From: Diadema antillarum
Taxonomy: Eukaryota
NCBI RefSeq assembly: GCF_040938485.1
Contig: NW_027270940.1
Location: forward strand, 992,001-1,056,000
Length of the DNA stretch: 64,000 nucleotides
Reading direction: 5' to 3'
Every line of letters begins with the position of its first letter. The stretch's first letter is position 1. Under the pieces are notes generated by a model, which ran no database searches, was not told the origin of the DNA, and was given only the letters and a program-made list of their open reading frames with translations. Of the stretch, positions 13,711 to 45,868 are shown in pieces. Both the position numbers and the translations under genes were made by a program.

Positions 13711-14321
13711 CTATACCAAAAGCCACAAAAAACTGCAGAATTGCGACATGCACCTCGATGAGTTTCTGTACTCGTTCTTGCTGATAATGAAGCATGATAT
13801 AACTATTGTATTGAGCGTTTTGTTTTTTCGATATATCTTCTTCAGAGCCGTTTGAAGATTAACATTTGTTAGTTCTCGTAATCCTTTTAGAGTTGTATTT
13901 GACATTTTATAAGCTCTTGTGTTATGTAAGTCCTTCGGTTGAGGAGAAACAAAAATATTACTCAAAATTACTGATACGCCGTGAGACGGGAGACGGATAG
14001 GACTTATATTTGAGAACATTGCTGACGTATATGCCGAATATGTATCAAACACTTTGATAGTCGTTTCAATACTTGTCACTGTGACACTTTCCTTACTTTT
14101 TCTGTTTCAACAAGAAGTAAACAGAAGGAAGTGACTGATATATTTACTTCACAATTTGTGATCGATGAGACAATTGTGTTGGCGAATTTATCAGTCTTGC
14201 CATAGAAATGTACATCTTTACGAACAGAATGAGGGAAGATGCACACAAATTTAGCCAGGTTTTCTGCTGCTTGCGTATCCAGAACATCCGGCAAGGAAAT
14301 CTTAATGAAGCGATCACGAAT
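13711..14321 (-). CDS. NLR last exon (final LRR-like unit plus C-terminal tail), split over two frames
   Basis: Acceptor tttttttcag then IRDRFIKISLPDVLDTQAAENLAKFVCIFP; the frame ends at TGA 14078-14076 while a second open frame (KSKESVTVTSIE...LWLLV*) runs 14100-13711. One extra A in the A5 run at 14101-14097 would join them. Confidence 0.55.
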
Positions 14322-14419
14322 CTGAAAAAAAAACGAAGAAAACAAACCGCATGCACACTTTGAAGCATGAGGGCCTAATACACTAGTACCTGTTATATCT
14401 AATATTGATATATGATATA

Positions 14420-14422
<3 letters not shown>

Positions 14423-14451
<29 letters not shown>
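14423..14451. repeat. (TA)n microsatellite
   Basis: Directly visible. Confidence 0.9.
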
Positions 14452-14455
<4 letters not shown>

Positions 14456-14829
14456 TATTATGTATCCATTATATATTGATTCGTTTTTTCATTGTTGAGA
14501 ATTCAGTTCAATTCAAATACTTATGCGAAATTTCTTTTGCCCTGCTCAAATTACGTAATTATATATTATTTGCTTTCCTAGCTATAAAAAAACCACATCA
14601 TAACAATGCCATCACTTGTCACAGAGAAATACACGACACTTGTCATAATACACACAATCAAAAGGATTACAACCAATTTAATTCATTGCAGTATTAAAGA
14701 TAATTTCCTTTCTGTGATTGTTCGATAATTACAATTATTGAAGGAGCTTTGGTACCGGAAAGGAAAAATGGGGAAAACTGGGGACCCTCTTCCATCCCGT
14801 GAAACTCTTACTCCTGAAACCCCACACCA

Positions 14830-14928
14830 AATGATAATAATGATGATAATAATAATGATAATGAAAATGATAATAATAATAATGATAATAATGATGATAA
14901 TGATAATAATAACAATGATGATAATAAC
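14830..14928. repeat. (ATA/ATG)n trinucleotide repeat
   Basis: Directly visible; explains the Ile/Met-rich ORF 14738-14995. Confidence 0.9.
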
Positions 14929-15503
14929 AAAATACGACCCAACTATTTCAAGACCCGAAAATAATTTGGTTACAGCTCATTTTTCCGACGGTTGATTGAC
15001 ACGACAACCAAATAAGTTTCGTAATTCCGTATTTTGTCTGTCATTTTCGGATTAACAAACCTTCGGAATAACGAAAACCGTTTTCGAAACAACAATTTAA
15101 ACCAAAATTCTAATCACTTAACACTATAAACACGTTTGCTTTGGAAACGGAAACTCAACAAATTATTAGAAATGGTTAAAAACAAAGTCTACATTGGAAC
15201 CCCTCCTCGCTTAAAACAAAACAAAACAAAGAAAAAAAACAAAGAAAATTCTCATATCTGAACAGTTTTAACATTTTCGGGATTCTCTCTTTTACGGCAA
15301 AAATTTTGCCTATACGATGCATTTCTCCATATGTTGAAAGGCTTTATAACGAGGAAACGACAAATAAGTGAAGATATTTTTGTGATGAATGAGTATGCCG
15401 TTTTTGAAAGAAGAAAAGGTCTACATGCAGACGATGAGTAAGCACATGTTAAAAAAAAACACTCCGAAGGGCGTATTTTCGCAGTCAAAAAGGAAAGGTG
15501 TAC

Positions 15504-15671
15504 TTTAAGTTGGCATTCCTGATTAGATGGCTCCAGGTCCGTGGGCATTGGATAGAAGCAGCTCCATGTCACACTGAGGCTCAAAAGGCTTGGCAGGGTA
15601 AATACCCATTTGATAAAGTCTTTTTCAGTAGGGGATATCAATGGACACATGTTCAGCTCTAATTTCTGGAT
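15504..15671 (-). CDS. NLR LRR-like exon 4 (56 codons, phase 0-0)
   Basis: tttgtttacag acceptor; IQKLELNMCPLISPTEKDFIKWVFTLPSLLSLSV...ECQLK; donor GTACAC is weak, so the 3' boundary is less certain. Confidence 0.7.
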
Positions 15672-16649
15672 CTGTAAACAAAGAGAAAATTTACTATGAA
15701 GAAAATACATGAAAGTGTGAATATTGGACAATGACTAGACGTACGCACAATAGAACACCGTTCTAAATGGGTGGTGCATTTTTCGTTGAGACGGGGCTTT
15801 AGGTTTCCAACGTTTTATGGTGAGGATTCCTTTTTGAAAGATAGGCCCTACTGACAAACCTCTTATCATGCCTATGAAATATAAAGGAGGTTATAATTCA
15901 AAGTTTATTTGATGAAAATTGGTTTCAAATGGTTAAGAAGTCATTAAAGGAAGCGATCTAATAAAAGATGGAACGCACTTTTCAATAGATCACTTTACTG
16001 TACTTTTTTGGGGGATATGTCGGCCACATCAAAACTGATTTTCACCAAATAAACTGTGAATTCTTCTCGAGTTGTATACTCCATAACATTTCACAAAGTA
16101 GCTTCTAAGTATGTCACAGAAAGTGTGAAGCTGAATCCATAAATATCAAAGAGAGAAAGAGAGAGAAGAAATACCAACGGAATTTACTGATGGTCAATGG
16201 GAACCTGTCAACTTTCTTAACGATAATGTTAAAGCAAAGTTCACATAGTTTGATTGGCGTATAACATACTTCAAAGAATAAAAGGTTTGACAGTACGGGT
16301 GATATAGTTCTAAGAATTTGATAAGAATTTCCATTATAATTATGACTTGTACCCGTCACAAATACCATATCATTTGATTGGTTAAATCGTTGACAGTTTT
16401 CAGTTAGTAATTAGGTGTTACTAACATTACAAAACATGACAGGTTATTCAAAAACAACAACAACAAAACTTTGATACGATGGAATTTAAGCAAGATAATC
16501 AATCCACAAATGTCGTAAGTGATAAGTGAAGGATAACGGGGTTGTCGTCAGCACCTGTAACATTGATTTGCACAATATCTAGATTCATACTCATGCTCTA
16601 TGGCGAGCCCGAACTAATAACAGGTCATTATGCCTCCGTGATGTAAAAC

Positions 16650-16900
16650 TTCATTTAAGCTCTCGGGATGCGACAGATTTTGTGAAAGGCCTTTTGAAGG
16701 ATTTGTTTTAAATGCAGGGCATTATCTCTCACAGCATTTCAGCGTATATCAGCATGAGCTCTTCCTCTGATCTGATAGATTGTCATGCCTCTATAGTCAG
16801 ACATATTCATCCTTTAAAACTATGAAGCGTAAGAGTCGTATTCTCCCTTGCAGAGCACCACTTAAGATTCCTTTTCACCCAAGCACCAAGATCAGTGAAG
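16650..16900 (-). mobile_element. Possible very old CR1/L2-type RT C-terminal remnant
   Basis: Minus-strand FTDLGAWVKRNLKW resembles the RT-end motif DLGV...L.W; the rest is decayed. Confidence 0.25.
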
Positions 16901-17081
16901 ATGCATTTTTCTCACACCAATGCTACGTACATATTATGTTTTGTTCTAATAATAAAATGATATTCAGTGCTGTTATCTATAAATTCAAATGACTGAATGT
17001 TGAGTGAAACCAGCATAATACAAACTATGATGCGTTCTTCTCTACGTTCACTAACAAATGCTTATTGTGCATAAGAAATAC

Positions 17082-17252
17082 CTGACAGGATTTTGCCATG
17101 GCGATGGCTGTTGACAAGAAATTATCGGGAAAGCTCCCATCTCTCAAACTTAGGCTCGAAAGATTTGGCAGAGTATGCACCCATTGGGCCATGGGTCCTC
17201 CAATCAAGTCCAGATTTCGACTTTCAATGAAAGATAACGTCACATCTTGAAT
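17082..17252 (-). CDS. NLR LRR-like exon 3 (57 codons, phase 0-0)
   Basis: ttgttatttttcag acceptor; IQDVTLSF...MAQWVHTLPNLSSLSL...AKSCQ; GTATTT donor. Confidence 0.85.
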
Positions 17253-17437
17253 CTGAAAAATAACAAAATATACACCTGGAAGTGCGAAATCAAAACCAAA
17301 GTCGTGTGAATAAGCAGATATAAATGTATCTGAGGACGTGATATCAATGTCAGTTCTCAAACAGGGAACATGCCGCAAAACCAGCGAGGGCACCGTCATT
17401 TCAGTTTGTTTACTTCATTTCTTACAGAAATACAATT

Positions 17438-17916
17438 GAGTATCTGAATGTAAGAACGACCCAAGTCCATGGAAGACCATTTCGAGTAAACCAAAAAACT
17501 TCATATCTTTTTTATTTGTCCAATAATATTCTATTTAACTGTGATGGGAAGGCAACATTATATATACAAATTAGAACATATATCATTATGACAATTAACA
17601 TTTACATTGATTGTGGAGAGGCCATTTTGTGTGATAGACTTGGGTCGTTCTTTGAATCATATGGACTTGGGTCGTTCTCTGAATCATATTCATGATATTC
17701 TGCTATAGAGATGATAGAAGGATGAGAGAGGGCGCTATAATATGAATGTTAGAATGACCCAAGTCCTCCATTCTTACATTCATTTCAGGCACTTCCGGGG
17801 GTAATTAGGATTTATCATTTATACACAAGATGAGTCCATGCATAAGTTACAATTTTCCATGTCAAACTGAATTTGGCCAAAAATCGGACTTGGGTCGTTC
17901 TTATATTCAGGTCTTC
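17438..17916 (-). mobile_element. Intact 479-bp MITE with AATT flanks (empty twin of 623-4222)
   Basis: AATT at 17434-17437 and 17917-17920; TIR cores AAGAACGACCCAAGTCC / GGACTTGGGTCGTTCTT; continuous across the site occupied by the Sola-like element in the other copy. Confidence 0.85.
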
Positions 17917-18868
17917 AATTGCAAAAAAGACATTTCAATGCGTAAAAACTATAGGGTTCTACAGAATCAATACAACACTCTAAGCACGGAAAATACTGTG
18001 AACTGAAATACAATAGATGCGACTTTTAAAGTAAATATCGTATCAACATTGATAAAAAAAATAGAAAGCACGGTAATAAAAAAAAACCAGAAAAACACTG
18101 ATCTCTGTGTAACTATGGAAATCAGTGGGAGAAGGGGGCGAAGCGGTTGAAGGGTCAAAACCAGGGCGAGCAAGGCACGATATGTTTGGGATCGCGGAGG
18201 TATAAGTACAAGGGTTTGTATTTAATGAAAGACTATATATAAGCGATTATGATAGAAAGGGGTTGGAATTAGGGCTTTCTAATATACTTTATACCTTGAA
18301 AGTAAACGTGCAAAAGACTTAAAACTTCTTCAATATAATTATCCAGAGAGTTCTAACATTTTCAGCTTGCACAGATAATTAAAATTTGGTTAGTTAAAAA
18401 AAAGAGTCGTAGTCAAGGGCATTTATTGAAATACATCGGATTGCGAAATAGACAGTTTCGTTTTGAACGGACATGGAATTGAATACAGGAGGGAGATGAT
18501 GGCTAATAAAAGCAATTATGAAGCAGATGATCATTGTCATGCCATGTCCATGATTCCTTAAAAATAATACGAAGATTTTTTTTCCTGTTATGATGTTATT
18601 CTCTCATTCATTCACTTTTAACAGTCCCATGCAGGAAATTCTTCAAAGTATTGAAATTCTTGTTAGAAAATGGAGAAACCATGCAACGAAAAATAAACTT
18701 TGCTTGAAAACGTGGTAAATCCATTTCCGTTTTGTTTCAAAAGGTGCTAAATCCAATAGAATCCTATTCGAAACCATTGTACATGATTAAATGCACTTTG
18801 ACCCCATAGTAAGGCCAAGTTGGCTAGCTTTCCTGTCTGTTTAGCTTTCCAGATGACCAACGTCTTGG

Positions 18869-19690
18869 TTAACTCCGCCAGTAGGTGAAACCTACGGTCG
18901 GTGGAGATTATGTTTTCGGTTCCGTATGATTGTCTGCATGTCTGTCGGGTTGTTTGTCTGTTTGTCAGTCTGTCTTTCTGTACGTGTACAATATAATTCA
19001 AGAACGGGTGAATGAACTTTCATAAAGTTAGCAGAGTATGTACATAATAAGGAAATATTAATGAACAATTAATGTTGGGGGTCATGAGATCGAGGGTCAA
19101 ATGTCATAGGGGTCATAAAGGACATACAAAAAACTTAATTTCCCAATAACTAAAAAACGACTGATTAGATTTCAATTAACACTTGCAGTGTTTACAAAAA
19201 GATAAGAAAGACATACTCTAATTTAGGGATCAAGCAGTCAAAGGTCAATAGGAGACATAAAGGACATAAAATCAGCTTTGTTCCTCTATAACTCCACAAT
19301 GGTTGATCACATTTCCGCTAAACTTGTAGATTATGTTATGTGAAGTACGAAAGAAACTATGATGTCAAAGGTCAAAGGCATAGTATCCATAAAGGACATA
19401 AAACAAGCTTAATTTCTCGGTAACTCAAGAACGGATGAAAACGTGGAAGTGCGTTCACAATGAAGAAAGAATCGGTTAAATTTGGGGTATTGAGGTCAAA
19501 GATGAACGGCCATAACGGTGATAAAGAACATTGTCATCAATGGTTGATGGGTTTTTCTCCAATGTGTTACACAGATATCCCTGTACCTTTATATACGGTT
19601 GTGTTAAAGATACTGGCTACGAAATAGCGATATTTTAATCTTGACTGTTTGCTGGAGGGTTTGCTGTCTTAAAGTGCTCCTCTGCAGTTA
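18869..19690 (+). mobile_element. DINE-1-like Helentron-derived element (HINE), older family
   Basis: 5' TTAACTCCGCC...GGTGGAGATTATGTTTT, a GTCT-type microsatellite, repeated GGTCAAAGGTCA motifs, 3' GGAGGGTTTGC...AGTGC. Confidence 0.55.
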
Positions 19691-20091
19691 TTTGCGGTGA
19701 AATGTTTCATTTCTATGTATAAAAACAGAGACTTTGGAGGGAATAAGGAAACAGGAAAACATACAGAGATGAGAAATCATACAAGAACAAAATACACCAC
19801 GTGTTATTAACGAGTTACTTGTACAATATTTTGGGGTATGTAATCATATATAAGTTTGGAAATCATGAAAGGAAGAGAAAATGTGAGTAAAACTGACTTT
19901 GGCAATTTAACTTTTAGAGTACTCTAATCTTCAAGATATGTTTCCGTATGATTAAGTGAAAGGGAAAATTATATGCCATTTTAAAGTGTAGCATCTCGCA
20001 AGTTCAGATCTACCAAAACCGAAAAATTACTTGAGATGATGCTTTTAAAATGACAAAGTACATTCGACTGATATTTGTTTGTTTTTTCACT

Positions 20092-20094
<3 letters not shown>

Positions 20095-20133
<39 letters not shown>
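20095..20133. repeat. (CA)n microsatellite abutting the LINE 5' end
   Basis: Directly visible; supplies the THTH run of ORF 20079-22640. Confidence 0.9.
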
Positions 20134-20136
<3 letters not shown>

Positions 20137-20139
20137 ATA

Positions 20140-23100
20140 CATGCAAAAGAAATGTACATTTCTTAAATTCATCTGTAAATGAACATTACTTAAATTCATC
20201 TGTAAATGAATTGCCTTATGATTTTGGTGGAGAGTTAACTGAAAATATGTTGTGTAAATATATTACTGTGAATCAATGTAAAGATATTTACGAAAGTTTT
20301 TCTGAAGATACATTTTCTTTGTTGCATTTAAATATCAGGAGTTTGAATAAGCATTTTGATGAGTTAAAATTATTTTTAGAGACTGATGCAAATCAGGCAT
20401 TTTCTGTTATTGGTTTAAGTGAAACCTGGTTAAATTCCAACACTGAAAATTTTTTCAACATTGACGGCTACAATATATTTGCTAATAACAGGCCCGATAA
20501 GAGTGGTGGAGGTGTTGCACTGTACATATCGAATGCTTTTGAATGTATTGTTCATGATGATATTTCCAGAATGGATAATATTGTTGAATCATTATTTTTA
20601 GAAATTTACATCCCAGGAATTAGGAATATTGTGGTCGGCATTATGTACAGACCTCCAAACTCCAATATCAAGGATTTTTTAACTTACCTTTCAGATTTGA
20701 TAAAATCCCCAGTTTTTAAAGATAAGGATTGTTTCTTTCTCGGCGACTTCAATATTAACTTATTCAAGTTGGAAAATGATACTGCCGCACACGAGTTTCT
20801 TCAAACATTTTTGTCCTCTTCTTTTCTTCCGCTTATTTCGAAACCTACGCGTGTCACTGATCACTCTGCTACTCTGATCGACAATATGTTTTGTAATACC
20901 CTACCCCTTATTAATTCTTATATAATTCTTTCAGATATGACAGACCATTATCCAATTATGACTCATTTTGCGCTTAAAACCTCAGTTAATAATGTTAAAT
21001 TTTTCTCATCTCCTTTATTGAGTCGTAGAGTCTCGTCTGAAAAGCTAGCTAGTCTTGATGCGGTTCTCGAAACTGTTGATTGGTCAAGAGTTTTTGAAAG
21101 TGATGATATTAATTTGTCTTTTGATTATTTCATGGAAACATTTAATTATCATTTGGATAATGTAATTCCGAAACAAAAAAATAAACCAGATTATAAAAAG
21201 ACACCTAGGTTGCCGTGGATTACAAAATCAATTCTTCGGTCGATTAACAGGAAAAATCGATTGTATTATAGATACAAATTGGAAAAAAATGAGCGATCAA
21301 AACGTAAATACACTTTATATAAAAGTACTCTAACTATGATTTTACGTTCTGAAAAGAAAAGATACTATTTTAAGCAATTGCAAAGATACAAGTTTGATAT
21401 GAAAAATACTTGGAATGTGTTAAAGCAAGCTATGAATGTCTCGAGTAAAAAATCTGGTTTCGACAACATTAAGTTGAATGATGAAATCATCAGTGACCCT
21501 GTTCACATTGCAAATGCTTTCAATTCTTACTTTTCAAAGATAGGTGAAAGTTACGCCCAAAATATTCCTGCGTTAGAGCATCATTTTACTGAATATTTAG
21601 GCCAGCGCAATTCCAATTCTGTTTATTTTACTCCAACTAATAGACATGAGATTATTGATATTGTATCTTCTCTTAAGAACAAGAGGAGTTCTGGGTATGA
21701 TGATATAGATAATTTCATTCTTAAAGGTGTCATATCTTCAGTTGTTGATCCACTTGTTCATATATTCAATTTGTCAATTTCTAACGGTGTGTTTCCTGAC
21801 AAGATGAAACTGGCCAAAGTAATTCCATTATTTAAGAAGGGTGATAAATCCGATGTTAGTAATTATCGTCCAATTTCATTATTATCATCGTTGTCCAAAG
21901 TTTTAGAGAAACTCATTTATAAGAGAACTATTGGTTTTTTGAAGTTGCATAATATTTTTACTAATTCGCAATTCGGTTTTCGAGAGAAGCATAATACAAC
22001 TCATGCTCTTTTATATTTTATTGATAAAGTGGCTCACGCAATTGATAATCACTCTCATTTAATTAGTATTTTCTTGGACTTCTCCAAGGCCTTCGACACT
22101 GTTGATCACGATATTCTACTCCACAAGTTATCACATTACGGAATACGTGGGAAGGCCTTGGAGTGGTTCAAGAGTTATTTGGAAAATAGAAGACAGTTTG
22201 TTATAATCAAAGATAATTGTTCAGTGATAAGAGAAGTAAATTGTGGTGTTCCGCAGGGAAGTTTATTAGGGCCACTGTTATTTATTGTTTATATTAATGA
22301 TTTTTGTCAGGCATCTGAAGTACTTTCTTTCATCCATTTTGCTGACGATACCAATGTATTTTTTGCCCACAATGATGCTAATTTTCTTGTTCTAAAAGTT
22401 AATTCTGAATTACAAAAAGTGAGTAATTGGGTAAGAGCCAACAAATTATCCTTGAATGCCCAAAAAACGAAATACATGATTTTCAGTAATACTGTTGATA
22501 CTCTGAGTACAGCTATAGTTTTGAATGATATCAGTTGGAAAGAGTTTCACATCTTAAATTTCTTGGAATTATTGTTGACGACAAACTTTCCTGGAAGTTA
22601 CATATTGATTATATATCCAACACAATCTCGCGTAATATAGGCGTTATAAATAGAATGAATTCGTATATTCCACAAAAATCATTACTTATGTTATATTCTT
22701 CATTGATATTGCCTTATCTTAATTATGGTGTTTTAGTATGGGGTAACACTCATCAGAATCTACTGGATAGAGTGTTTCTCCTACAAAAGAAAGCTCTCCG
22801 TATCATCTGTTATCCTTCCATACCCTCCCACTCAAATTTGTTATTTTCCTCCAATAAGCTATTAAAAATTAAAGATTTGTTTTTATATAATTTGGGGCAA
22901 TTTATGTACATGTACAGCAACGACTCACTCCCGTCCATTTTTGCTTCTATGTTTCAAAGAAATCAATCATTCCATGAGTATCCCACTCGACGCTCCAATG
23001 AATTTCATTTACCTCTTTTACGAACGATGTTTGCTAAGAACACACTTATTTACACTGGCCCAACTTACTGGAATTCCCTGAATAATGATATAAAAGATTC

Positions 23101-23176
23101 CCCCTCTATATATTCATTTAAAAGAAGATTAAAGCTTTCTTTATTGCAATTTTATGATCCCACAGAATTGAATTAG
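20140..23176 (+). pseudogene. LINE ORF2 (endonuclease-reverse transcriptase) with a single frameshift near 22530
   Basis: ORF 20079-22640 reads to ...IVLND, then the RT end (ERVSHLKFLGIIVDDKLSW) continues in ORF 22535-23176. Confidence 0.9.
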
Positions 23177-23908: not shown

Positions 23909-24030
23909 TTGCAGACAATCAGTATATGCATAATTGTATATACGTCAAAGAAGACAGAATCGTCTGATCTTTCAGTGAATTTTCGCATTCGAATTACGCG
24001 TATTATAGTAGTCAACAGAAATATACTTAC

Positions 24031-24216
24031 CTGACAGGAGTATGTCATGGTGACTGCTGTTGAAAAGAAATTGTGTGGCAAGTTGTAGCAATAATTCACA
24101 GCGAAGCTCGAAAGACGTGGCAGTGTACACGCCCATTGGGCCAAGCATTCTCCAAGCGACAATGTATGTAGAGAGTTGTCTGTCCAGTTTTGATTGCACA
24201 ACTCGAGATACTGTAT
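24031..24216 (-). CDS. NLR LRR-like exon 2 (62 codons, phase 0-0)
   Basis: tgttgtttgatatag acceptor; IQYLEL...CLAQWACTLPRLSSFAV...YSCQ; GTAAGT donor. Confidence 0.87.
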
Positions 24217-26941: not shown

Positions 26942-27103
26942 CTGACAGGTTGAAGACTCCTCAGTGAGGATCTTGTAGAAGTCCATGTGAAATCTGCAGT
27001 CATTTAGTGTTACTTTATGCAGCACACAGCTGGAACATATACCCTTCGCCAATTCACGCGAAAGAGTTTGTCCACATTTCGTTCCGTCAAGACGTAATGA
27101 TTT
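26942..27103 (-). CDS. NLR LRR-like exon 1 (54 codons, phase 0-0); absent from the ORF track
   Basis: ctcccgttag acceptor; KSLRLDGTKCGQTLSRELAKGICSSCVLHKVTLNDCRFHMDFYKILTEESSTCQ; GTAAGT donor. Confidence 0.87.
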
Positions 27104-28913: not shown

Positions 28914-28950
<37 letters not shown>

Positions 28951-29502: not shown

Positions 29503-31004
29503 CACTTGATTACAGTGTACCATAAACGTAATTCCTGGCTTTGTATGTTCTGATGTTCCATGTGATATTTCGTATTATTCCCATTGTTTCCCCACTACTC
29601 TGGCTGCCTCCTCAGTGTTACATTCGAATGCAACGTCAACGCAGTAATCCTGGTCAGAGCATTCCAGCAAGCTGTCAATGATATCAAGACAGAGCTCATT
29701 CCCTAAAGCTGATGTAAAATAGAGTATGTAACGGAACTCTTCGTATCGACTGAGAAGTGTTTTCTTCAGGTCATTGTACTTGGCGCCATCATTGGCAAAT
29801 AAATGTTCGATGTATTTCCCTGCAGCATATTCTTGAAATAATTTGTGGGAGAAAGAAACCATTGGCACAACGAAGCATGTAACGTCAACATCTCTTTCTA
29901 CTGCCAAAACTCCGACTCTGCAACAGGTTTCCATGGCATCTCGACATTCTTTGAATTGTTCTTCGCGAAATGAATGTTTTCTGTCCAATAAGCCGTTCAG
30001 TGCTATCCAACTTATATCTTGAATTGCCATATCAGCTTCCTTCAAATGTTCCGTAGAGTTCTGGGTTTGTCGATTTCCGCATACTTCTGACGCGTAGTGT
30101 TCTTTCAGAAAAGAAATAATTTCTTCAAAAACCTGGGAAATAGTTTCTGATTTTTTAATTTCTTCCCGTCTCGCTTCACTCAATTCACTCCACATGAGGC
30201 AAAATGTGGCACAGTAGATCGGATACGGGGCCATTTCCAGCCAAACAATATCATTTTCTTCCATGAAAGTGATCAAGTTTTCTCCAAGAGTGACCATCTC
30301 TCCTGCTCCGTGAGTTCGAAAGTATCTATTTATATGTTCTGATAAATCCTTCCTGTCGAATCCCTCGATGCCAATTAATGTGTAAGCTATAGTATGAGCG
30401 ATATCCTCCAAGAATTCAATCGCTCTCCATGATCTTGTGGTCACAATTACCTTGCATGACATATATTGTTCTGATCTTAGAATGCAAATAACCTCACTGC
30501 CACATAGTTCCCCGTTATACTCATCGAAACCATCAAACACGAGGAGAATTTTATTTTGATTTACTGAGATGTACTTTTCTATCTGGATTGTTGTTGCTGT
30601 ATTTGAATCAGATAGGTATGATTTTATGATGTCACTTATACTTTTGCCGTTAGTGACATCACTAATAGAAACTAGGACCACCATGTCCAGATCCTGGAGA
30701 ATCCTACCCTGGCACCAATCCCAGGCAATCTTGGAGCAGAGTGTTGTTTTCCCGACACCTTCCTCACCCACTATCAGGGGGCGCTTTGAAACGTTGGTCA
30801 ATAGATCGCCGTACGTTGTTGTTGTAGACTTCCTTCCGTCCGTTATACTCAAATTGGGATTTATTTCGTCCATTTCAGCACATTCCAAAAAGTTGAGTGG
30901 AGCGAAAGGAATCTTGCTTCTTGACGTACGGTAATGCTCCTTCAGCTCTTCTTGGCAGCGCTGTACTTGTTCCTTTGTAAGCCAAACTGAGCTACGTGGT
31001 GACC
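29503..31004 (-). CDS. NLR NACHT exon (1502 bp, phase 1-0) with in-frame TAA at 29577-29575
   Basis: ccctttcaag acceptor; Walker A GEEGVGKTT, Walker B ILLVFDGFDE, sensor-1 VIVTTR, winged-helix FSHKLFQEYAAG; 24 further sense codons follow the stop up to a GTGAGT donor. Confidence 0.93.
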
Positions 31005-33724: not shown

Positions 33725-33799
33725 TCATCATTAATTCTTCTTCCTCATGAAGTTGCTCTGGTTCGTGTGGTCTCCAACAGCATGGATTCCAACCACATC
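33725..33799 (-). CDS. NLR 75-bp cytoplasmic juxtamembrane exon (phase 1-1)
   Basis: atatttcacag acceptor; GCGWNPCCWRPHEPEQLHEEEELMM; donor GTATAA keeps frame with the NACHT exon. Confidence 0.72.
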
Positions 33800-34205: not shown

Positions 34206-34331
34206 CTTTTCTTGGTAGGTATTCCGGATGATATTTTTGCAGGCACTTTCCAACAAGGAGAGATAGGATGGCTAGGGCAACAGGAATGCCAATGACTAGT
34301 CCAATGATGAGACCCAAATTACCACGTTTTC
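34206..34331 (-). CDS. NLR transmembrane exon (126 bp, phase 1-1); absent from the ORF track
   Basis: tttttttttcag acceptor; GKRGNLGLIIGLVIGIPVALAILSLLVGKCLQKYHPEYLPRK, a hydrophobic helix followed by basic residues; GTGGCG donor. Confidence 0.87.

Positions 34332-34410: not shown

Positions 34411-34412
<2 letters not shown>

Positions 34413-34448
<36 letters not shown>

Positions 34449-34758: not shown

Positions 34759-34836
<78 letters not shown>
34413..34836. repeat. Two (TA)n microsatellites (34413-34446, about 34756-34836)
   Basis: Directly visible; explain the IYIYIY ORFs. Confidence 0.9.
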
Positions 34837-34839
<3 letters not shown>

Positions 34840-34893
34840 CACTTGTTATCCCTTTGTCATTTAGAAACACGAAAATAACAAAGTTTCACAAAC

Positions 34894-35244
34894 CTGGTAT
34901 AGGCCGGACGGTGATTTCTACTGTCGACGCTCCATTCATTAACGAGTCACCGATAGCTATACACGTAAAGGTTTCCTCCGTCCCATGTAGGCCTAAATCT
35001 GAAACAGATATCATCTCAAACCTCTCGTATGAGTCGTCAGGTAGTGTTGTCTGCTGAGAGCTCAAGGACTCTAGTTTCTTTCCCGACTCCTCAGTCCACA
35101 GCATAGAGATGTTAGGCTTGAATCCACTCACGACACAGGTAAGATTGAAGGTAGGGGTGTTGGAGGGAGTTTGGTACGTACACCGCCTTTGATGTGACTG
35201 ACTTGTATCGTCGCATTCCTTGATTGCATGTTTTGATGCCATCG
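34894..35244 (-). CDS. NLR Ig domain 2 exon (351 bp, phase 1-1)
   Basis: tttcttgtttcctaag acceptor; FNLTCVVSGFKPNISMLW ... FTCIA; GTTTGT donor; N-x-S/T sites NLT and NIS. Confidence 0.9.
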
Positions 35245-35871: not shown

Positions 35872-36032
35872 CGGTCAATTTTGGTACGAAATCAGTCATT
35901 TCGTCAAAATGGCCACTTCGTCACAAGATTAGTCATGTCGTAGTTAAATGATCGATTTCGTCACGAAATCGGTCATTTTATCGATGAAATAAATGACTTT
36001 GTGACATCTTTTTGTAACGAAATCGACCGTGT
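35872..36032. repeat. Decayed foldback repeat (ACGGTC(A/G)ATTT / AAATCGACCGT)
   Basis: Imperfect inverted ends and internal ATTTCGTCA repeats. Confidence 0.45.
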
Positions 36033-36142
36033 GACACTTAGCGCCCCATAGCCGCTGCGGTTATCCGTAAAATTTAACTTCTCTTCTAGATTAAGGATCA
36101 CCATCTAACATAACTATAAATAAACACGTGAATGTGACTTAC

Positions 36143-36442
36143 AGTTGACTGTCATGAAGACGGAGTTGTCAAAGTTTTCAAAATCGTTCAGCGTCACCTG
36201 GCAGTAGTAGAGACCTTCATCTGCTACCTTCAAATCGTTGATCACGAGGCTGAAATTTTTGTCGATGTCGAACCGTTCCTCCACGCCCTTGAAGTTTCCT
36301 TCCACGAATGTAGCCTTGGTCGTCCTCGGCTGATCATCGGAGATGCTCTCCTTGACCCAGAACACAGCTTCAGGCTCCTCCTGGATACCACAACTCAGTC
36401 GGATGTCTTCTCCTTTCCATCCCTGAAAGGTAGAGGCAGTAC
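36143..36442 (-). CDS. NLR V-type Ig domain exon (300 bp, phase 1-1)
   Basis: IRLSC...VFW...FSLVINDLKVADEGLYYC (canonical V-set DxGxYxC); AG acceptor and GTAAGT donor. Confidence 0.92.
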
Positions 36443-37214
36443 CTACCATTGATCATAAACAATGGAAAAGTGAGTAGATGTATAGTTCAAGTTTGGTAGG
36501 AACTTTTGTGGAGAGAATTTTACTTGAGGGAAGTGATTCCCACGATATGTCAAGGGACTGGCCTGCAGAATATTTATATAATATTGACTGGCCCTGAGGG
36601 AGGTACCAGAAAATATTGCCCAAACTGAAAGCATATTACCCGAGTCGAAGACGAGGGCAATATGTTTTCAGTGCGGGCAATATCTATCTGGTACCTCCCG
36701 AAAGAAAGGCCAGTCAATATCATAATTATTACCTATCCCCTAGGTTAATTAAGAAAATATGTGAATACGGCTATACACTATGATACAGATCAAGCCACAT
36801 TTGATTACCTGTAGACCATCAACATGTTGAATAATTACAAAATTGTTCATCAATGTATATCATTCAACTCCAACTTCAAAGATAGATATGTAGTTGTAAC
36901 AGGCAAACTTCAAACATCTGAATGCTCTTACACTTTATCTTTACTTCTCTGTTTAAAGTTGGAGAGTTGTAAAACTACATGGTCACTGCGCAATTCGGAG
37001 CACAAATGGACTAGTCATTGTTTGACGCCTAGTGCTGCTGTAAGTGGTCGACCTTGTATGAGTTGATTTATCAGCGTTCTTCTGCGGTGCATGTAACTGA
37101 CACCCTGGACGACCTGGAATGTTTTTTTTTTTGTGGTCGATCGGAATGTTTACGTTTAAAGCAGGGAGGTGGGGAGAGAGATTCCACTCTTTCTCTTCCC
37201 ACCTCCCAGTTTTA

Positions 37215-37400
37215 CAGTGCACTCCTATTATAACGGCCACGGTTATAACAAAATTCTGGTTATAACGAAGTAAATATTTGGGCTGCAATGTCATCCACTA
37301 TATGTATTTCTATTGTTTATTTGTTCAGTTATAACAGCATTCCGATCTAACAAAAGAAAACCGCCGGTCCCGAGGATTTCGTTATAACAGGAGTCCACTG
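37215..37400. mobile_element. 186-bp Tc1/pogo-type MITE with TA TSD (duplicated copy 38143-38328)
   Basis: ta CAGTGCACTCCTATTATAAC ... GTTATAACAGGAGTCCACTG ta. Confidence 0.82.
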
Positions 37401-37504
37401 TATGAGTAAAACCCCCGGATGCTCGTGATATGCTCTAATATCGCCTGCTGAACTCCCGACCCTGCAAAATACCAACTGTAATTGCCTCGCAAAACTACCT
37501 CGTA

Positions 37505-37676
37505 TAGGTAATAATTATATGATATTGACTGGCCCTGAGGGAGGTACCAGAAAATCTTGCCCAAACTGAAAGCATATTGCCCGAGTCGAAGACGAGGGCA
37601 ATATGTTTTCAGTGCGGGCAATATTAATCTGGTACCTCCCGAAAGAAAGGCCAGTCAATATCATAATTATTACCTA
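37505..37676. mobile_element. 172-bp foldback with central GTC-GAA-GAC hairpin (second copy 36569-36735)
   Basis: Arms TAGGTAATAATTATATGATATTGACTGGCC / GGCCAGTCAATATCATAATTATTACCTA; centre CCCGAGTCGAAGACGAGGG. Confidence 0.75.
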
Positions 37677-39339
37677 TCCCCTAGGTAAATTAAGAAAATA
37701 TGTGAATACGGCTATACACTATGGTACAGATCAAGCCACATTTGACTACCTGTAGACCATCAACATGTTGAATAATTGCAAAATTGTTCATCAATGTATA
37801 TCATTCAAATCCAACTTCAAAGATACATATGTAGTTGTAACAGGCAAACTTCAAACATCTGAACGCTGTTACACTTTATTTTTACTTCTCTGTTTAAAGT
37901 TGGAGAGTTGTAAAACTAATGGTCACTGTGCAATTAACTGAGCACAAATGGACTAGTCATTGTTTGACGCCTAGTGCTGCTGTAAGTGGTCGACCTTGTA
38001 TGAGTTGATTTATCAGCGTTCTTCTGCGGTGCGTGTAACTGATACCCTGGCGTCCTGGAATGTTTTCTTTTTGTGGTTTACGTTTAAAGCAGGGAGGTGG
38101 GGAGAGAGATTCCACTCTTTCTCTTCCCACCTCCCTGTTTTACAGTGCACTCCTATTATAACGACCACGGTTATAACAAAATTCTGGTTATAACGAAGTA
38201 AAAATTTGAGCTGCAATGTCATCCACTATATGTATTTCTATTGTTTATTTGTTCAGTTATAACAACATTCAGATCTAACGAAAGAAAACTGCCAGTCCCG
38301 AGGATTTCGTTATAACAGGAGTCCACTGTATATGTAAAACCCCCGGATGCTCGTGATATGCTCTAATGTCGCCTGCTGAACTCCCGCCCCTGCAAAATAC
38401 CAACTGTAATTGCCTCGCAAAACTACCTCGTATAGGTAATAATCATGAATATGCGCTACAATCTTCTACGCTGGTGAGTGAAGATCATGGATCATCAGAC
38501 ACTGTTTCATTTGAAGTCAATGAAAGGTGTGTATTATAGTTGAATACGACTCCGATTTTCTCCTTTTTTTTGGGGGGGGGGGTGGAATAGAAGGGAAATT
38601 TAACTAGTAGACACCTAAATATGTTATTCCAGTAGAATGCCTTTATGTTGAATGATTAATGACATCTACACGATTTTGTCGCTGACAACAATATCAAAAT
38701 AGTTGTTCATGGCAAATGGTCAGCCAAGACTTACGTCGCATAATACATGGAAAGGGGTTAGTATTTTTTTTTAAACTATGTTGATTGTTGGGAACATTGT
38801 TCTTCTATCCATGTCTAGGTCTATTTTGTAATACATATACAAACGGTGATTGAATACAGGCAGCAAATAACGAATTGCCCGGCTATTAAGAAATCGCACG
38901 TCAATATAATATAGACTTTAGAACTAACATTTCTATAACGGAGGGGGAAGTAAACACCTATAGGAGAGTGAGGTCTAATCATTGGCGGATTTCGCCGCAT
39001 ATATTTTTGTCCTATTAATGTCTATTTAGGTAAAATAGAGAAACTAACCTGTCAATTTTTCTAATAGTTTATGTGTCATGGGAAGGAATAGTCGATAGTC
39101 TCCCATGAATGGGATGCGGTATGTGTTTTTACAGATGCAGGATCGAATGAGGTAACAGTACAGTGAGGTCTCGTCATTGTTTTTTGTTTCGTTTTGCTTT
39201 GCTTTGTTTCGTTTGTCAATGTTCGTTTTTGTTAGAATTCATTTCCATTCTATCAGTCGATTATTTCACTGTACATAAAGATTTCAGCAGTATAAAAAAA
39301 GTATCCTATGTGTAAATAAACATTCCATCTATTAAAGGC

Positions 39340-41989
39340 CTACCCTTATGGAAAGAACACAGTTTTACCACACTATGTAACACAGTGTGCAACACAGTGT
39401 GGCACACAGTGTCGAACACAGTGTGGAACACAGTGTGTAACACACTGTCGAACACATGTGTTTGATATGTGTTTAATATGTGATTTTGGGACGTGTGGTA
39501 ACACTGTGTATTTACCACAGTGTGAAACACAGCGTCACCACACTGTGCAACATAGCGTAACCACATGGTCCAAAACATATTAAATACACTGTGAATCAAA
39601 CCACAGTCTCACACACTGTGACCACAGGGTTATAACCACATAGTCCATTACACTGTGGTAGTCACCACATAGTCCGCCACACTGTGGTATTCACCACATA
39701 GTCCACCACACTATGGTATTCACCACATAGTCTACCACACTGTAGCAGTCACCACATAGTCCACCACACTATGGTATTCACCACATATTCTACCACTGTG
39801 GCAGTCACCACATAGTCCGCCACAGTACATTGTGGTAGTCACCACATAGTCATCACTCCAGTTGGTACTGCTGTGTGGTATTGTCCTGTGATAGTCATGT
39901 GGTATAGCATGCCAAGAAACAAAACCCACAAGAATATCCTGTGACATTTTTCTGTAATTAAAGTGTACAAGAAAGCAGTTGTAAACACAGTTTGAATTCA
40001 TACTACTGAATATTCTCGGCACACTACCAGAAGAAATTATTGTGTACAAGTAACAGACAGTGAAGTGGCATTTGTACATGGTTTTGTGGTTTTGGAAGAT
40101 GATAGTGATGCCTTTGCTCTCGTTAAGTATGTAGAGCATGATGGCCCATTTGTAAAGAATAGAGACAGGGAGAGCCATGCTGATGCTGGACACATCAGAG
40201 TAGTGAAACGTGTGCCCAATAGATTGTATACAATACCTCCTGGTGAAATGAATGGAAAGCATGTGATTCATGAGAGACACAGGGAAGTTATAACATGTCA
40301 CTTTTTGTTCTCTTTTCACAACTACAGATATTCCCAGTATTATATCATTTCTGGTGTTTGATGTTATGCATCCGTAAACAGTATTTACACAACATTAAAT
40401 GCATGATTTATTCATCTGAAGGTTGGATAAATGACATATATAGGTCATTTTCTCACATTAAATGAATCTGTTGTTCCATGCCAGTATATGAAATTTGAAA
40501 GGTATCAACTGAAATTAGAAAAAAAAATTAAGTATTGAACATTTGCAACTACCGTGTACTTACATTGTGTTGTATATTGTTAGCTATAAGTTATTGGTTT
40601 ATTACTTCATTGGATGATAAGACCAGTTAAGTTGCTTTACAAACTTGATAAAAATCGCTGGAGAGTAAATGTAGTGATGAGGTATATTCGTTTAATTTGA
40701 TACGTAAATGTACATTTATTAATAAACTACAATACTTGAATCCTTTGACCACACTGGTAAAATGCTCTCCCCCCAACAAAACCAGAAATAGCCTGGTTTT
40801 ATAAGGATTAACATGCCATGTGGATGTACAAGATCTGAAATCCCATACTGACAGCACTATACCAAAGTTCAATATACACCTCAATGTGGTAAACATGAGT
40901 CATTGTGTGTCAAAGTACTAGATGTTCAAAAAATAGTTTAAGCTTTTGATTGTGAATGACGGAAAACCCATGAAAATATAACTTTCCAGAAATTTACACA
41001 ATAGGTAGCTAATATAGGCATACAATTTTGTTGTATGCTGTTTCCTGCAATACTTTGAAACAGTACCCAACAAAATTATGCGTTATTCAGCGGATACCTA
41101 CTGTGTAAATTTGAGGAAAGTTAATTTCATTATTTTTTAGTTATTCAAAATAAAAAAATGTAGTGTTTTTTCCTGAACATCAAGTATGTGGATATTATTG
41201 TAGTGTTAAATCAATGATCTGAAATCCCACTGTGTAACAACATTATGGACACAGGAGTTTACATATTTCTATGTATACCATACTGTGTGTTCAGTATGCC
41301 AAGTACGTGGAGATGATGTAGGTGAATGATCTGAAACCCACAAAGTGACAACACCGAGCACAGGGTTTACACATAGTTCAGTATATACCACACTGTGGTA
41401 AGCACAAGTCACAGTGTCCGGTACACGAAGTCAGTGTGGATTATGTGGTAAATGAATGATCTGAAATCCCACAGTGTGACAACACTATCTACACAGAGTG
41501 TACACATAGTTCAAAATATACCACACTGTGTCAAACATGATTCACAGTGTGTTCAGTATGTCATCTATGTGGGGATTATGTGGTAAACCACTTAAACTGA
41601 AATACCAGACTGTGGTAGCATTATGAACACAGGGTTTATACATAGTTCGATACATGCCACACTGTGGTATATGTGTGCCACTCTGTGTTCAGTATACCAA
41701 TAAAGTGGTACACTATGTGATCTCAAATCCCACACCGTGACAACGCTGTGACCACATGGTTAGCACATTGTTTACACATAGTCAACTATGTGAACACACT
41801 GTCGTAACACTATGCCACACTGTGGTATATGTGTGCCACTCTGTGTTCGGTATGCCAGTTATGTGCTACACTATGTGATCTCAAATACCACACTGTGACA
41901 ACGCTGTGACCACATGGTTAACACATTGTTTACACATAGTCAACTATGTGAACACACTGTGGTAACACTGTGTTTGTTCCATAATGGTA
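39340..41989 (+). mobile_element. Non-autonomous CMC/EnSpm-like element, about 2.65 kb
   Basis: Imperfect TIR CCCTTATGGAAAGAACACAGTTTTACCACA / RC CCATTATGGAACAAACACAGTGTTACCACA with TA flanks; CACAGTGTG-rich subterminal arrays; remnant at about 39960-40320 (IHTTEYSRHTTRRNYCVQVTDSEVAFVHGFVV) resembling the C-terminus of animal EnSpm transposases. Confidence 0.6.
39632..39850. repeat. 29-bp minisatellite (CACCACATAGTCCACCACACTGTGGTATT), about 8 units
   Basis: Directly visible head-to-tail units without unique spacers. Confidence 0.85.
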
Positions 41990-43689
41990 TGCCTATAAGC
42001 ATTAAAGTCATTGTATTATGCGTATGAAAAATTGACATTTGTATAATAAGAAGAGATGCCTAGTTTTTCAGTTCATTTTAAGCAACAACAAAAAAAAATG
42101 TTGACAGGACATTACCTTCCTGACAATCGGTGACAAAATATTTGTCATCACTATATCAAAGCATGAGAACCGATTTTCGGGGCTGATATTCTTTCCTATA
42201 CACGCTGATAATACGCCATATACAAGCTGACACACAGAAAACTGGATTACTGTAACAAGTGTTCAACAAGGTGAGTCGACTGTACGGTGATTGAACTTTG
42301 GTGAATGATAATTTGATGTCAGTCATGTTGAACCTAACATCTCATTCTTTTAGCTCGTCGGAAAAAATGTTCATTACCATTTGACAAACCATCAAAGAAC
42401 ATGAAATTTGAGTAGCAATAACCATGATGTAACCAATAATCATAATATAAAACAGATATTATTCCAAAATACTGAATCTTCGTTTACTGAAATCTGATCA
42501 TCGGAACACAAATATTAAACTGCGTAAGGAAAAAAAAACCCGCTGTTATAACACTTTTTATTCCCGCAAGCATACCTCAACACTTTTTGACACTCTCTTC
42601 TCTGTACTTCAACCAAGATATGTAGACTGTCCTTTTTAGAAAGACTAAAGATAAAAAAATGAATAAATGTAATGTGTCATAACATGTATAACCTTATTAT
42701 TAGACACCAATGTGCCTCTAAAGCTGCAATTATTGTAACGGAAACCACAAACGTTCTTTAGAAATGAGCGAGAAATGATTCTATTTGGCTAAAAAAAATC
42801 ATCATTTTCATCAATCATTTTTCTGAGCTGCAGCATTGCCAGAAAGTGAGGGGGAAATATTTTGTTTTCCTTTTTATCTTTTTACAAATTGAATGCAGAT
42901 GTGCGATCGTTAAAGGCTCGCTAGCTCCGATTTTAACAATATTTTATTTCGAATAGAAAAACAATGAACTAAAGAAAATGATGTGCATTTTCTACTTTCC
43001 TCGGTCATTAAAAGAAAAATACCTATAGCGCAAAAAAGAAGGGAAAAAGAAGAAGATAAATGATATACCATAAATACGTATGATATAGATATGTATTTAG
43101 TAGTATAGACAATGCGACAATAATATGTATTTAATTATGTAAATGTTAATGTTTGCATAAATAATTTCACATAAACATTGTTTCATTGATATTACTATAT
43201 TTGCACCTCGACATACGTATACGTATACATACGTATTTGTCGAGGTCTTGTTAAGGATAAAATGCCTATAGGTATTATATCCGTAACAAGACACTTCGAT
43301 TGAACGGAAACTGTCAAGCCACTGCACCCTTCTCAGTCGTATATCACTCTCTGCCTTTTACAAAATTCCTACGATCAAAATCCACTGCATACAATTTTCA
43401 TGATTCGTTGACAAATATTTACCCAGACATATTACATAAAGGCCCTTCAGGATTAAAAGCAAACGTAATTGCAGCTGTTTGCTTTTTTTTTTTCAGGACC
43501 AAAATTCATGCGCTTGAATATCCTCAGCACCTTCGTTTTATTTCAGCATTTACAACCACAGCATTCTGTGAACGAACATTTCAAATAATTACTTCCTGTG
43601 ATTGTTGTGATTGAAATTGTTACAGCAACTACATCATTTTTTCTCCTTTATCTATTCATTTATTACTTATTTGCGTGCAAGACGTGGCA

Positions 43690-43826
43690 GGTTCAAAGTT
43701 TATGTGGGATTTCTCATTGCCTCAATACGGCTCTTCAGGATCAGAATGTATTTCGCGGGCTGAATGCACGGTCCCTATAGACGGCAAACTACGACGCAAT
43801 AGTTCCAATACAAGATGGCGTCAGCG
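43690..43826 (+). repeat. Dispersed repeat copy 2 (homologous to 5767-5903)
   Basis: Shared AAAGTT(C/T)ATGTGGGATT, GCCTCAATACGGCT, GATCAGAATG, ACGACGCAATAG, TTCCAATACAAGATGGCGTCAG. Confidence 0.7.
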
Positions 43827-45456
43827 CCTCCGTGTAAAACCCAAGCCGACTTCTATCAATGCATGCACACATGAACCCACACACATTAATGTGTGGTTTG
43901 GATAAATTCATTTTTTTTTTGGCAACTCGTATCTTCAATGTTCTTCACTGATTTCTTAAATTGCAACAACGTTGACGTAACCTAATGGCATATTGAAATA
44001 ACGTCAACATTTTTCGTTTTGCTAATAAGCTTTCTTCAAACCCGTTCTCCTTTGACATTACTAACGTTGTTGATAACCCGATTAAAATTCCAATTAGATT
44101 TTGACCTCTAGAAAACCATTAAGCTAATGATCTCAATGTGGAAAGTGAAACACTGGACCATAACAAAATCATTTTAAAACAAAGAGATACAGCTTGTTAG
44201 ACTATTATATAGAAAACCTCTGGACATATACCTCTTTCCTACCAATATAGTCCAAGCTTTGATGGACCATTATGGAAAGTGGTAATGCCACATCAGAAAC
44301 CCACACAGAAATTCAGAGTACAGAGAAAATTAATGTAAAATAAATGTATGGAAATAAAGTGTTGGATGATTATCATTTTTTTTTATGGGGGGGGGGGCGG
44401 TTGAAACAAAATATGCCGCATTCATCGTGGTGGTAATGAATGGAAATAATTATTCCATTCTTCAAAATTATGCAAATTTGTCTCAATATGAAGTGCGGAA
44501 CCCTATTTTGAAAAAAAAAAAATCATCACATCCAGCGCGTTGCGATAAGCTGGAAATATTCTAACATTCTGCATAAAAATGAGAACAAGTCCCTAATGGA
44601 TTCCCACATTCCTTTGGTCCTGACGTGTACTATCAGTCCATCAGGTTTTAATGGAGTCGTTTATGCTGGCTTCTATTGGATCATCAGAATGTCAGTTACT
44701 GACTGAAAGATTAAAAAAAAAAACTCTGGTTGCTGCTGGTCCGTCAAACTCCGACAGAAACCATTAGAAATCATCAGATATCTGTATAGGTCTTGGTGGT
44801 CTCTTCGGATAGTCCCTATAATGGAATAATTTATACCTCACCTTTAATATAGGGCCTACACCGTAATGCCCCATTCGAAAACCATGACAGATACACATGA
44901 CTGAGATATCACAATACCGTTTTCTGATGGTGTCTTTATTATATCAAAGACTGTTGTTTTGATTGCTCGAACAATAATTATTACGATCATCACATGGCCA
45001 TTAACCCTCTAGTGGAACTATTAGAGTTCTCGATGGTGTGTCATGGTTTTAAATGGATCGATCTACTTTCGACACGGGGAAAGTGAAACTATCTTTCCAT
45101 AAGGCTGGCCGTAAAAGCGAAAGTGAGTAGGTCCAATGTTATCGACACTGACTTCATGCCACACGCTTACTCTATACACGAACATTAGTTTTCACTCATT
45201 TCATCGGCATACATAGTCCGGCTGTCTTTTACCCCTATACCGGTTAATACCTGAGATTTATCAGTTTTTATACAGACTATGGATTTTTCATTAGATTTTT
45301 AAAAAATTTATTTATATACCACCTTATCATGTACATATACTCATTGATAATGTTTGACGATATTCTGGTGGGTTCCATAGTTTTATACACACCATTGAGT
45401 GATACATAATGTTGGCATCCAACAACGTTATAAAAATAATTGATACTAATTATGTT

Positions 45457-45780
45457 CGATTCAATTCATTTTCAAAGTTTATTTCGTTTTTCGACAAATA
45501 TGCATGTCACTTCCCTTGATAACAATGACAGTGAATAAGGTAAACCAAACATTGCAGAATGAAAAGACTATACAATAATTGAGGAAATTTAGAATTACTT
45601 TTCATTGTGATAAAAACAGAAGTGGTCGAAGTAAAGTATAACATTGCGCAAATTGCGAAAAATGGAGGGACCCACTAAACAGGCAGAGCTTGTAGAATGG
45701 GAATCAATGAAAAAATAAATTGAAACACCTAAAAAAAAAAGTCTGGAAGCCCCCTGAAAAATAGAGTACGCAAGTTCGTA
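45457..45780 (-). mobile_element. 5'-truncated 3' end of an L2-clade LINE
   Basis: Reverse complement matches the 3' UTR motif at 23660-23720 (CATTCTACAAGC...TTAGTGGGTCCCTCCATTTTTCG); ends AATAAA plus TGAAT-type tail. Confidence 0.75.
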
Positions 45781-45798
45781 AAATAATGTAACACTCAC

Positions 45799-45868
45799 CT
45801 TCTGCCGCAGCGCTACAGCACACAGAAGCCAATATTAGCAGAAAAACGAGGTTGAATCTGTTATTCAT
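45799..45868 (-). CDS. NLR first coding exon: signal peptide (70 bp, phase 1)
   Basis: ATG at 45868: MNNRFNLVFLLILASVCCSAAAE, then G|GTGAGT donor; phase matches the IgV exon. Confidence 0.82.

Follow-up and report, generated by a model that had tools for sequence, protein, structure and literature searches.

NLRs, nucleotide-binding receptors with leucine-rich repeats (LRRs), are textbook cytosolic sensors; a gene that seems to set an NLR core behind the ectodomain of a surface receptor therefore raises the question of whether the two parts belong to one protein and whether that protein can still be made. Such a gene lies in a 64,000-nucleotide (nt) stretch of genomic DNA from the sea urchin Diadema antillarum (RefSeq assembly GCF_040938485.1, contig NW_027270940.1, positions 992,001 to 1,056,000, forward strand), here called the window, whose own numbering is used throughout; it corresponds to contig JBFRCO010000052.1 of GCA_040938485.1, with 0 mismatches over 35,453 nt. 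It is highly probable that the locus represents one copy of a large Diadema family of type I transmembrane NLRs and that this copy is disabled, most likely as a young pseudogene or a null allele.

Exons, topology and fold of the receptor

The gene runs on the minus strand from 45868 to 13527 and comprises 12 coding exons, which join in frame into 3,333 nt, or 1,110 codons, encoding in order a signal peptide, two immunoglobulin (Ig) domains of the IgV and IgC types, one transmembrane (TM) helix, a linker rich in Cys, the NACHT module and five exons of LRR type; the spliced frame holds a single TAA and is otherwise open. Exon phases are 1-1 across the Ig, TM and linker exons and 0-0 across the LRR exons. 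A preliminary description of this DNA had proposed the same domain order, which is supported by the Pfam domains, the hydrophobicity profile and the spliced model; its count of 11 exons and about 1,240 codons has to be replaced by the figures above, as a scan of the whole window with a hidden Markov model (HMM) of the family LRR unit revealed no hidden extra LRR exon. Its claim of canonical splice sites throughout holds for 10 of the 11 introns, which have the usual family GT-AG sites, and fails at the donor of LRR unit C. Pfam scans were run on the larger minus-strand open reading frames (ORFs), the small exons were located through stop-free stretches and direct reading of the DNA, and the 3′ exons were placed by tblastn with four paralogues together with direct reading. 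The signal-peptide, TM, linker and first LRR exons are indeed absent from the listed ORFs of at least 60 amino acids (aa), as had been stated.

Exon 1 (45799-45868; donor GTGAGT, phase 1) carries the start codon, at 45868, and the signal peptide, composed of an n-region with R, a 14-residue hydrophobic core (Kyte-Doolittle peak of the exon, 1.96) and an A-x-A ahead of the predicted cleavage site; the N-terminus is identical in the NCBI protein XP_071483230.1 and homologous in P0006 (P numbers designate related proteins). Exon 2 (36143-36442, phase 1-1) encodes the IgV domain, identified by Pfam V-set at 1.1e-11 in the ORF span 36114-36449, with the core C...W...D-x-G-x-Y-x-C and one N-x-S site. 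Exon 3 (34894-35244, phase 1-1) encodes a B7/butyrophilin-like domain of IgC type, 66-71% identical to its paralogues; in the ORF span 34886-35242 Pfam C1-set scores 21.5 bits against a cut-off of 21, and C2-set_3, the butyrophilin Ig-C model, reaches 1.7e-4, which is below its own cut-off. The single TM helix is contained in exon 4 (34206-34331, phase 1-1; Kyte-Doolittle peak 2.87), where K and R border about 23 hydrophobic residues and a K/R-rich juxtamembrane part follows; the counterpart of this helix in the AlphaFold model of a paralogue is helix 252-272. Exon 5 (33725-33799; 75 nt, phase 1-1) is the Cys-rich acidic linker, CGWNPCCW...EEEELMM, which is conserved in the paralogues and used in XP_071483230.1. 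It is followed by exon 6 (29503-31004; phase 1 in, phase 0 out), which contains the NACHT module with its helical and winged-helix domains (Pfam NACHT 2.4e-16, 29575-30888) and the motifs GEEGVGKT (Walker A), LLVFDGFDE (Walker B) and VIVTTR; its sequence matches in the PDB are NLRP3 and NLRC4, at 2e-8 to 2e-7.

The LRR region opens with exon 7 (26942-27103, phase 0-0; LRR-N), found by tblastn with the four paralogues at 4e-13 to 5e-9, and continues with LRR unit A in exon 8 (24031-24216, phase 0-0), 62 aa with two repeats of the ribonuclease-inhibitor type (family LRR-unit HMM, 7e-22), and with LRR unit B in exon 9 (17082-17252, phase 0-0; 1.1e-14). Exon 10 (15510-15671) is a degraded LRR unit C, recognized by the same HMM at 1.2e-4 over model positions 2-44 only, and exon 11 (14148-14321, phase 0-0) is a terminal-type LRR unit D (4.9e-4; tblastn with P0008, 6.6e-5). 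The C-terminal tail, LENITVNGKP..., and a TGA (13529-13527) make up exon 12 (13527-13580), which matches the C-termini of P0002, P0005 and P0008; from this homology, the true 3′ end of the coding region is exon 12, at 13580-13527, and not 13711 as previously proposed, a position that is intronic. The ORF 13711-14079, considered as the 3′ end, sits in the last intron and was matched by no relative. Similarly, the in-frame stretch 17414-17253 upstream of LRR unit B, suggested by one tblastn alignment to be a fused LRR-N remnant, was not significant when tested alone. The family LRR-unit HMM detected no more than four units on both strands of the whole window.

As to topology, hydrophobicity analysis identifies the core of a signal peptide and, on the stretch that links the Ig domains to the P-loop, exactly one TM segment, in agreement with what had been predicted; no second TM segment after NACHT was seen by this analysis in P0032, P0006, P0009 or P0151. 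The cysteines and tryptophans of the canonical Ig core are present in the ectodomain, as are N-glycosylation sequons, and the cytosolic side opens with a basic stretch and a cluster of cysteines that could be open to palmitoylation.

An AlphaFold model was made for the intact paralogue P0151 from a 42-sequence family alignment, and its predicted local distance difference test (pLDDT) values are 80-95 over NACHT and LRR. Foldseek matched it to NLRC4, NLRP3, NLRP9, NLRP14 and NOD2 at about 1e-22 to 1e-19 (NLRC4 and NLRP3 at 1e-22 to 1e-21), and VIA-align gave Z 23.8 against both NLRP3 and NLRP9 (residues 309-1190) and Z 22 against ribonuclease inhibitor (740-1190). The cytosolic part is therefore predicted to be a complete canonical NLR core with LRRs of the ribonuclease-inhibitor type, although the Pfam LRR models miss them: Pfam gave zero LRR matches in the window's own C-terminal exons. 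In terms of what defines an NLR, a NACHT nucleoside triphosphatase (NTPase) with Walker A and B is recognizable in the sequence and C-terminal LRRs are assigned by the unit HMM and the paralogue fold, and the N-terminal CARD, PYD, Death or BIR effector is replaced, according to the predicted domains, by the signal peptide, IgV, IgC and TM.

The union of the Ig-TM exons with the NACHT exon is supported by existing gene models. XP_071483230.1 (P0032), a 438-aa D. antillarum 'uncharacterized protein' annotated by NCBI at this locus, has the same joins from signal peptide through IgV, IgC, TM and linker to NACHT; it then uses a cryptic GT-AG intron of 191 nt within the NACHT exon (30451-30641, minus strand), which changes the frame, so that the product stops at 438 aa. 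At the linker/NACHT junction (33725-33727 / 31004) this protein reads ...ELM-G-SPR..., which would require a non-canonical intron, and the sole GT donor in the DNA gives ...ELMM-R-SPR..., the pattern of the paralogues. The intact paralogue XP_071476618.1 (P0151, 1,195 aa) has a matching exon layout, spread over 37 kb, and the N-terminal module is common to the closest relatives P0006, P0009, P0082 and P0001, and to P0005 and its longer isoform P0151.

Diadema does have stand-alone Ig-TM proteins that carry this Ig module, and an ATG is present early in the NACHT exon, so that one may ask whether an upstream Ig-TM surface protein and a downstream ordinary cytosolic NLR have simply been merged into one model. 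However, the NACHT exon opens in phase 1 at its acceptor and thus requires a coding exon upstream; the linker exon is kept beside NACHT at dozens of loci in two species; both parts are joined in the gene models here and at the intact paralogue locus; and no Death domain, CARD or other N-terminal exon was detected between the TM and NACHT exons. Since the same joins are found in the family and paralogue models, and given the phase of the NACHT exon, a merger of two genes is exceedingly improbable.

The Diadema family

A HMMER search with the NACHT exon retrieved 3,527 relatives. When the Ig-TM region was used as the query, 77 proteins were recovered, each of them from D. antillarum or D. setosum, although such Ig-module searches depend on shared short words and matches in Diadema alone do not establish absence elsewhere; Pfam Ig and NACHT domains occur together in 73 of the 77, about 20 of these proteins being from D. 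antillarum and about 50 from D. setosum. The surmise that the architecture defines a class, rather than a lone gene, was correct, in that the design is common to more than 70 Diadema models. The nearest relative of the window copy is only 64% identical. Among 37 aligned Ig-type paralogues, mean pairwise identity is 63% for IgV, 72% for IgC, 70% for the nucleotide-binding domain (NBD) and 47% for the LRR region; the ectodomain is therefore not unusually variable.

Not all family members carry the repeats: at least eight models (P0170, P0171, P0172, P0180, P0183, P0198, P0204 and P0209) are LRR-less and end just past the NACHT exon. They are found in both Diadema species, and seven of them have similar tails after ...NQV, ...NKV or ...NHV.

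The IgV-IgC module is found elsewhere in Diadema as well: in Ig-only membrane proteins, before a P-loop of the form GEIAAGKS, and before multi-pass tails. Two sets of relatives combine IgV-IgC-TM with a non-NACHT P-loop of the GEIAAGKS type or with multi-pass tails (Pfam PF21534; one is named 'rolling stone-like'), namely P0239, P0241-P0243, P0246, P0248, P0257 and P0262, and also P0260, P0264, P0266, P0269 and P0270. Judging from these combinations, the IgV-IgC-TM module looks like a cassette reused through exon shuffling.

The state of the window copy

The TAA of the spliced frame is located at codon 784 (29575-29577, minus strand), 72 nt or 24 codons short of the GTGAGT donor of exon 6; aligned relatives have Glu at this site, and homology persists past the TAA as far as the exon's end. 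In LRR unit C, only the first two thirds correspond to the family unit, and the donor of this unit reads CAA/CT in place of the CAG/GT of the family, the nearest GT being a weak site 6 nt downstream. The preliminary description had counted two lesions; what was found here is one in-frame TAA (29577-29575) and one LRR exon without a CAG/GT donor (15671-15510), and no frameshift. Besides these defects, the window copy is altered at 4 of 46 positions that are invariant in the family and at 23 of 150 that are near-invariant, whereas 15 of 18 control paralogues kept out of the alignment show 0-2 and 3-6 such changes, respectively; just five of the 27 changes are common to the nearest relative. The 326 codons past the TAA contain no further stop, where about 17 would be expected from this gene's own introns, and the lesion is therefore recent. 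Taken from sequence comparison, the most likely state of the window copy is thus that of a young pseudogene or a null allele. Stable transcripts, if any, would lead only to truncated products, of 783 aa or of the 438 aa predicted by NCBI.

The absence of any stop among the 326 codons, against about 17 expected, could also mean that the TAA is an assembly or sequencing error, or is confined to one allele, and that the species also carries an intact 1,110-aa receptor at this locus; high heterozygosity has been reported for D. antillarum (PMC13511894). This explanation is distinctly unlikely, because NCBI has no full-length model here, LRR unit C is a second defect and conserved residues are eroded.

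A different possibility is that the TAA is a working stop, which would make the product a 783-aa LRR-less membrane receptor (signal peptide, IgV, IgC, TM and NACHT) and the downstream LRR exons leftovers. The LRR-less family models, seven of the at least eight with similar tails, provide a natural parallel; the sea-cucumber receptor AjNLRC4, described below, is functional without LRRs; and the Walker A, Walker B and sensor motifs of the window copy are intact. However, a good GTGAGT donor lies 72 nt downstream and is followed by intact open LRR exons, so that spliced transcripts would be candidates for nonsense-mediated decay; moreover, the product would be 24-27 residues shorter than the natural LRR-less forms, and invariant residues are eroded. 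A functional truncated receptor is, on balance, somewhat unlikely.

The assignment of the locus to a family of type I transmembrane NLRs, and of this copy to its disabled members, has to be weighed against several points. In this highly heterozygous species (PMC13511894) the TAA may be confined to one allele or stem from faulty assembly, and the existence of a natural LRR-less subfamily means that truncation need not entail loss of function. The annotated relatives P0001 and P0164 match the window copy in the erosion of conserved residues; being equally divergent, they indicate that part of the erosion could reflect a divergent subclade and not decay. As regards the architecture, the NCBI model is a prediction that takes a cryptic intron out of the NACHT exon, confidence is low for the Ig portion of the P0151 AlphaFold model, and the LRR assignment depends on family homology and on the paralogue fold, Pfam being blind to LRR here. 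Disablement of one copy of the Diadema family remains the preferred interpretation.

The window also contains a nearly full-length non-LTR (long terminal repeat) retrotransposon with endonuclease and reverse transcriptase in two overlapping ORFs (20079-23176, plus strand; Pfam RVT_1 7.8e-37, Exo_endo_phos 7.8e-9), which lies antisense within the intron that separates LRR units A and B and leaves the coding sequence unbroken. A second reverse-transcriptase fragment is located at 56725-57534 (plus strand). Intron 1 of the receptor gene contains, at 36569-38375, a tandem duplication of about 0.94 kb with copies that are 96% identical, and further upstream a 158-nt tandem pair, 94% identical, occupies 41654-41969. 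The upstream neighbour of the receptor gene is a 611-aa ORF that occupies one exon and encodes a B-box zinc finger (50437-52272, minus strand; Pfam 5.2e-6), annotated by NCBI as a 596-aa gene and contained in a GC-rich island (GC 0.47 vs about 0.36 around it).

Possible mechanism and comparison with known receptors

In the predicted protein, the Ig-TM cassette sits where other NLRs have a Death, CARD or PYD effector. In intact members of the family the signal peptide and Ig domains would face outwards, with the NLR core in the cytosol; when the ectodomains bind ligand or cluster, the NACHT modules may gather at the membrane, which would promote their nucleotide-dependent oligomerisation. The LRR might be a lid that keeps the protein autoinhibited, or a second sensor, and, because a death-fold effector domain is lacking, output would probably depend on proteins that bind the NACHT, LRR or juxtamembrane region. 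This 'two-sided receptor' mechanism, with NACHT oligomerisation driven by Ig clustering and with the LRR as a cytosolic sensor, is proposed by analogy with AjNLRC4, which is itself LRR-less; at the window copy the full-length mechanism is unlikely.

The interest thus lies in the family and not in the damaged window copy, which serves mainly as an example of copy gain and loss within it. This echinoid family shows that the NLR effector slot is replaceable by a surface-receptor cassette, and its dozens of natural variants, some with LRRs and some lacking them, could be used to study how outside signals trigger NACHT oligomerisation; of such receptors, only LRR-less sea-cucumber proteins have been studied so far. 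D. antillarum has suffered mass die-offs from disease, which makes its immune-receptor repertoire relevant to conservation.

Among other NLRs, the nearest NACHT relatives outside the Ig subgroup are 38-42% identical and come from S. purpuratus, Lytechinus and Diadema, and a more distant one is present in the brittle star Amphiura. None of the closest has an Ig or TM N-terminus; what they carry in its place are Death domains, 2A-like motifs or mucin-like regions. The sea-urchin NLRs with Death, NACHT and LRR domains are the closest NACHT-LRR sequences outside the Ig subgroup (38-57% identity) and share the LRR exon units, which measure about 60 aa and end in ...SCQ. They differ in that a Death domain is present, frequently preceded by a 2A-like D(V/I)ExNPGP motif, and in lacking signal peptide, Ig and TM. 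The 2A-like motif is a feature previously reported in S. purpuratus NLRs. It precedes the Death domain in many sea-urchin NLRs of the search of Death type (P0008, P0011, P0016, P0019, P0020, P0022, P0023, P0025, P0026, P0028, P0030, P0041, P0050, P0052 and P0078); the Ig-type members are without it. In P0148 a Death-like N-terminus is followed by a strongly hydrophobic segment (131-149) and then by NACHT, an arrangement that may represent another means of anchoring an NLR to the membrane. Vertebrate NLRC4, NLRP3 and NLRP9 share with the paralogue model the whole cytosolic fold, from the NBD through helical domain 1 (HD1), the winged-helix domain (WHD) and helical domain 2 (HD2) to the LRR horseshoe, and the P-loop and Walker B are present; however, these are soluble proteins of the cytosol whose effectors are CARD or PYD, and sequence identity is just 13-19%.

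The ectodomain, for its part, resembles that of the B7/butyrophilin proteins, with the succession of IgV, IgC and a single TM and with matches to Pfam C2-set_3 and C1-set. PD-L1-like clusters were the nearest by protein-language-model features, and one Diadema relative is named 'butyrophilin-like' by NCBI. The cytosolic part of the Diadema protein is a NACHT-LRR core and not a B30.2 domain or a short tail, and the similarity is one of domain type, which need not mean orthology.

Several AlphaFold DB cluster entries align to the Diadema paralogue P0151 from IgV through NACHT; the tool named no organism, and from their accession series we take them to be from the sea cucumber Apostichopus. These structure matches are the sole hint of a shared origin with the sea-cucumber fusion. 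The precedent that the preliminary description had cited is real: AjNLRC4 of Apostichopus japonicus is a membrane receptor with an Ig-like and an Ig domain, a TM, NACHT and a second TM, and no LRR (PLoS Pathog 2021; PMC8699970). It is present at the coelomocyte membrane, where its Ig domains bind microbes and polysaccharides, and it also oligomerises and drives actin-dependent phagocytosis (PMC8699970). Its sister AjNLR-new, a second sea-cucumber protein, has the reverse topology (JBC 2026; PMC13133943), and according to its authors TM-bearing NLR relatives are otherwise unstudied (PMC13133943). In sea urchins, the literature search found no paper on Ig-TM-NACHT-LRR genes; the D. antillarum genome papers, PMC13511894 among them, treat NLRs in general terms only and do not mention this architecture, and an older survey of sea-urchin NLR architectures reported no Ig or TM forms.

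Compared by its published description, AjNLRC4 resembles the Diadema gene in the order of N-terminal Ig domains, TM and cytosolic NACHT without CARD, PYD or Death, and the LRR-less Diadema models have the same domain content. It differs in the absence of LRR, in the second TM after NACHT and in a longer ectodomain of 482 residues, whereas a signal peptide, one TM helix and the complete set of LRRs are encoded by the Diadema gene; the text of PMC8699970 is silent on a signal peptide. We tentatively propose, as a plausible though by no means secure reading, that Diadema possesses an undescribed set of exon-shuffled surface receptors, in which one cassette of signal peptide, IgV, IgC and TM is combined with NACHT-LRR (more than 70 genes), with LRR-less NACHT, with a GEIAAGKS P-loop NTPase or with multi-pass tails. 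The NACHT-LRR form would then be a true two-sided NLR, with Ig outside and LRR inside, and it may have an origin separate from that of the sea-cucumber Ig-NACHT receptors. Ig-TM-NACHT receptors as such are already known, having been shown experimentally in the sea cucumber; what is new in Diadema is the combination of a signal peptide with a single TM, the retention of the LRRs and the large expansion in one echinoid genus.

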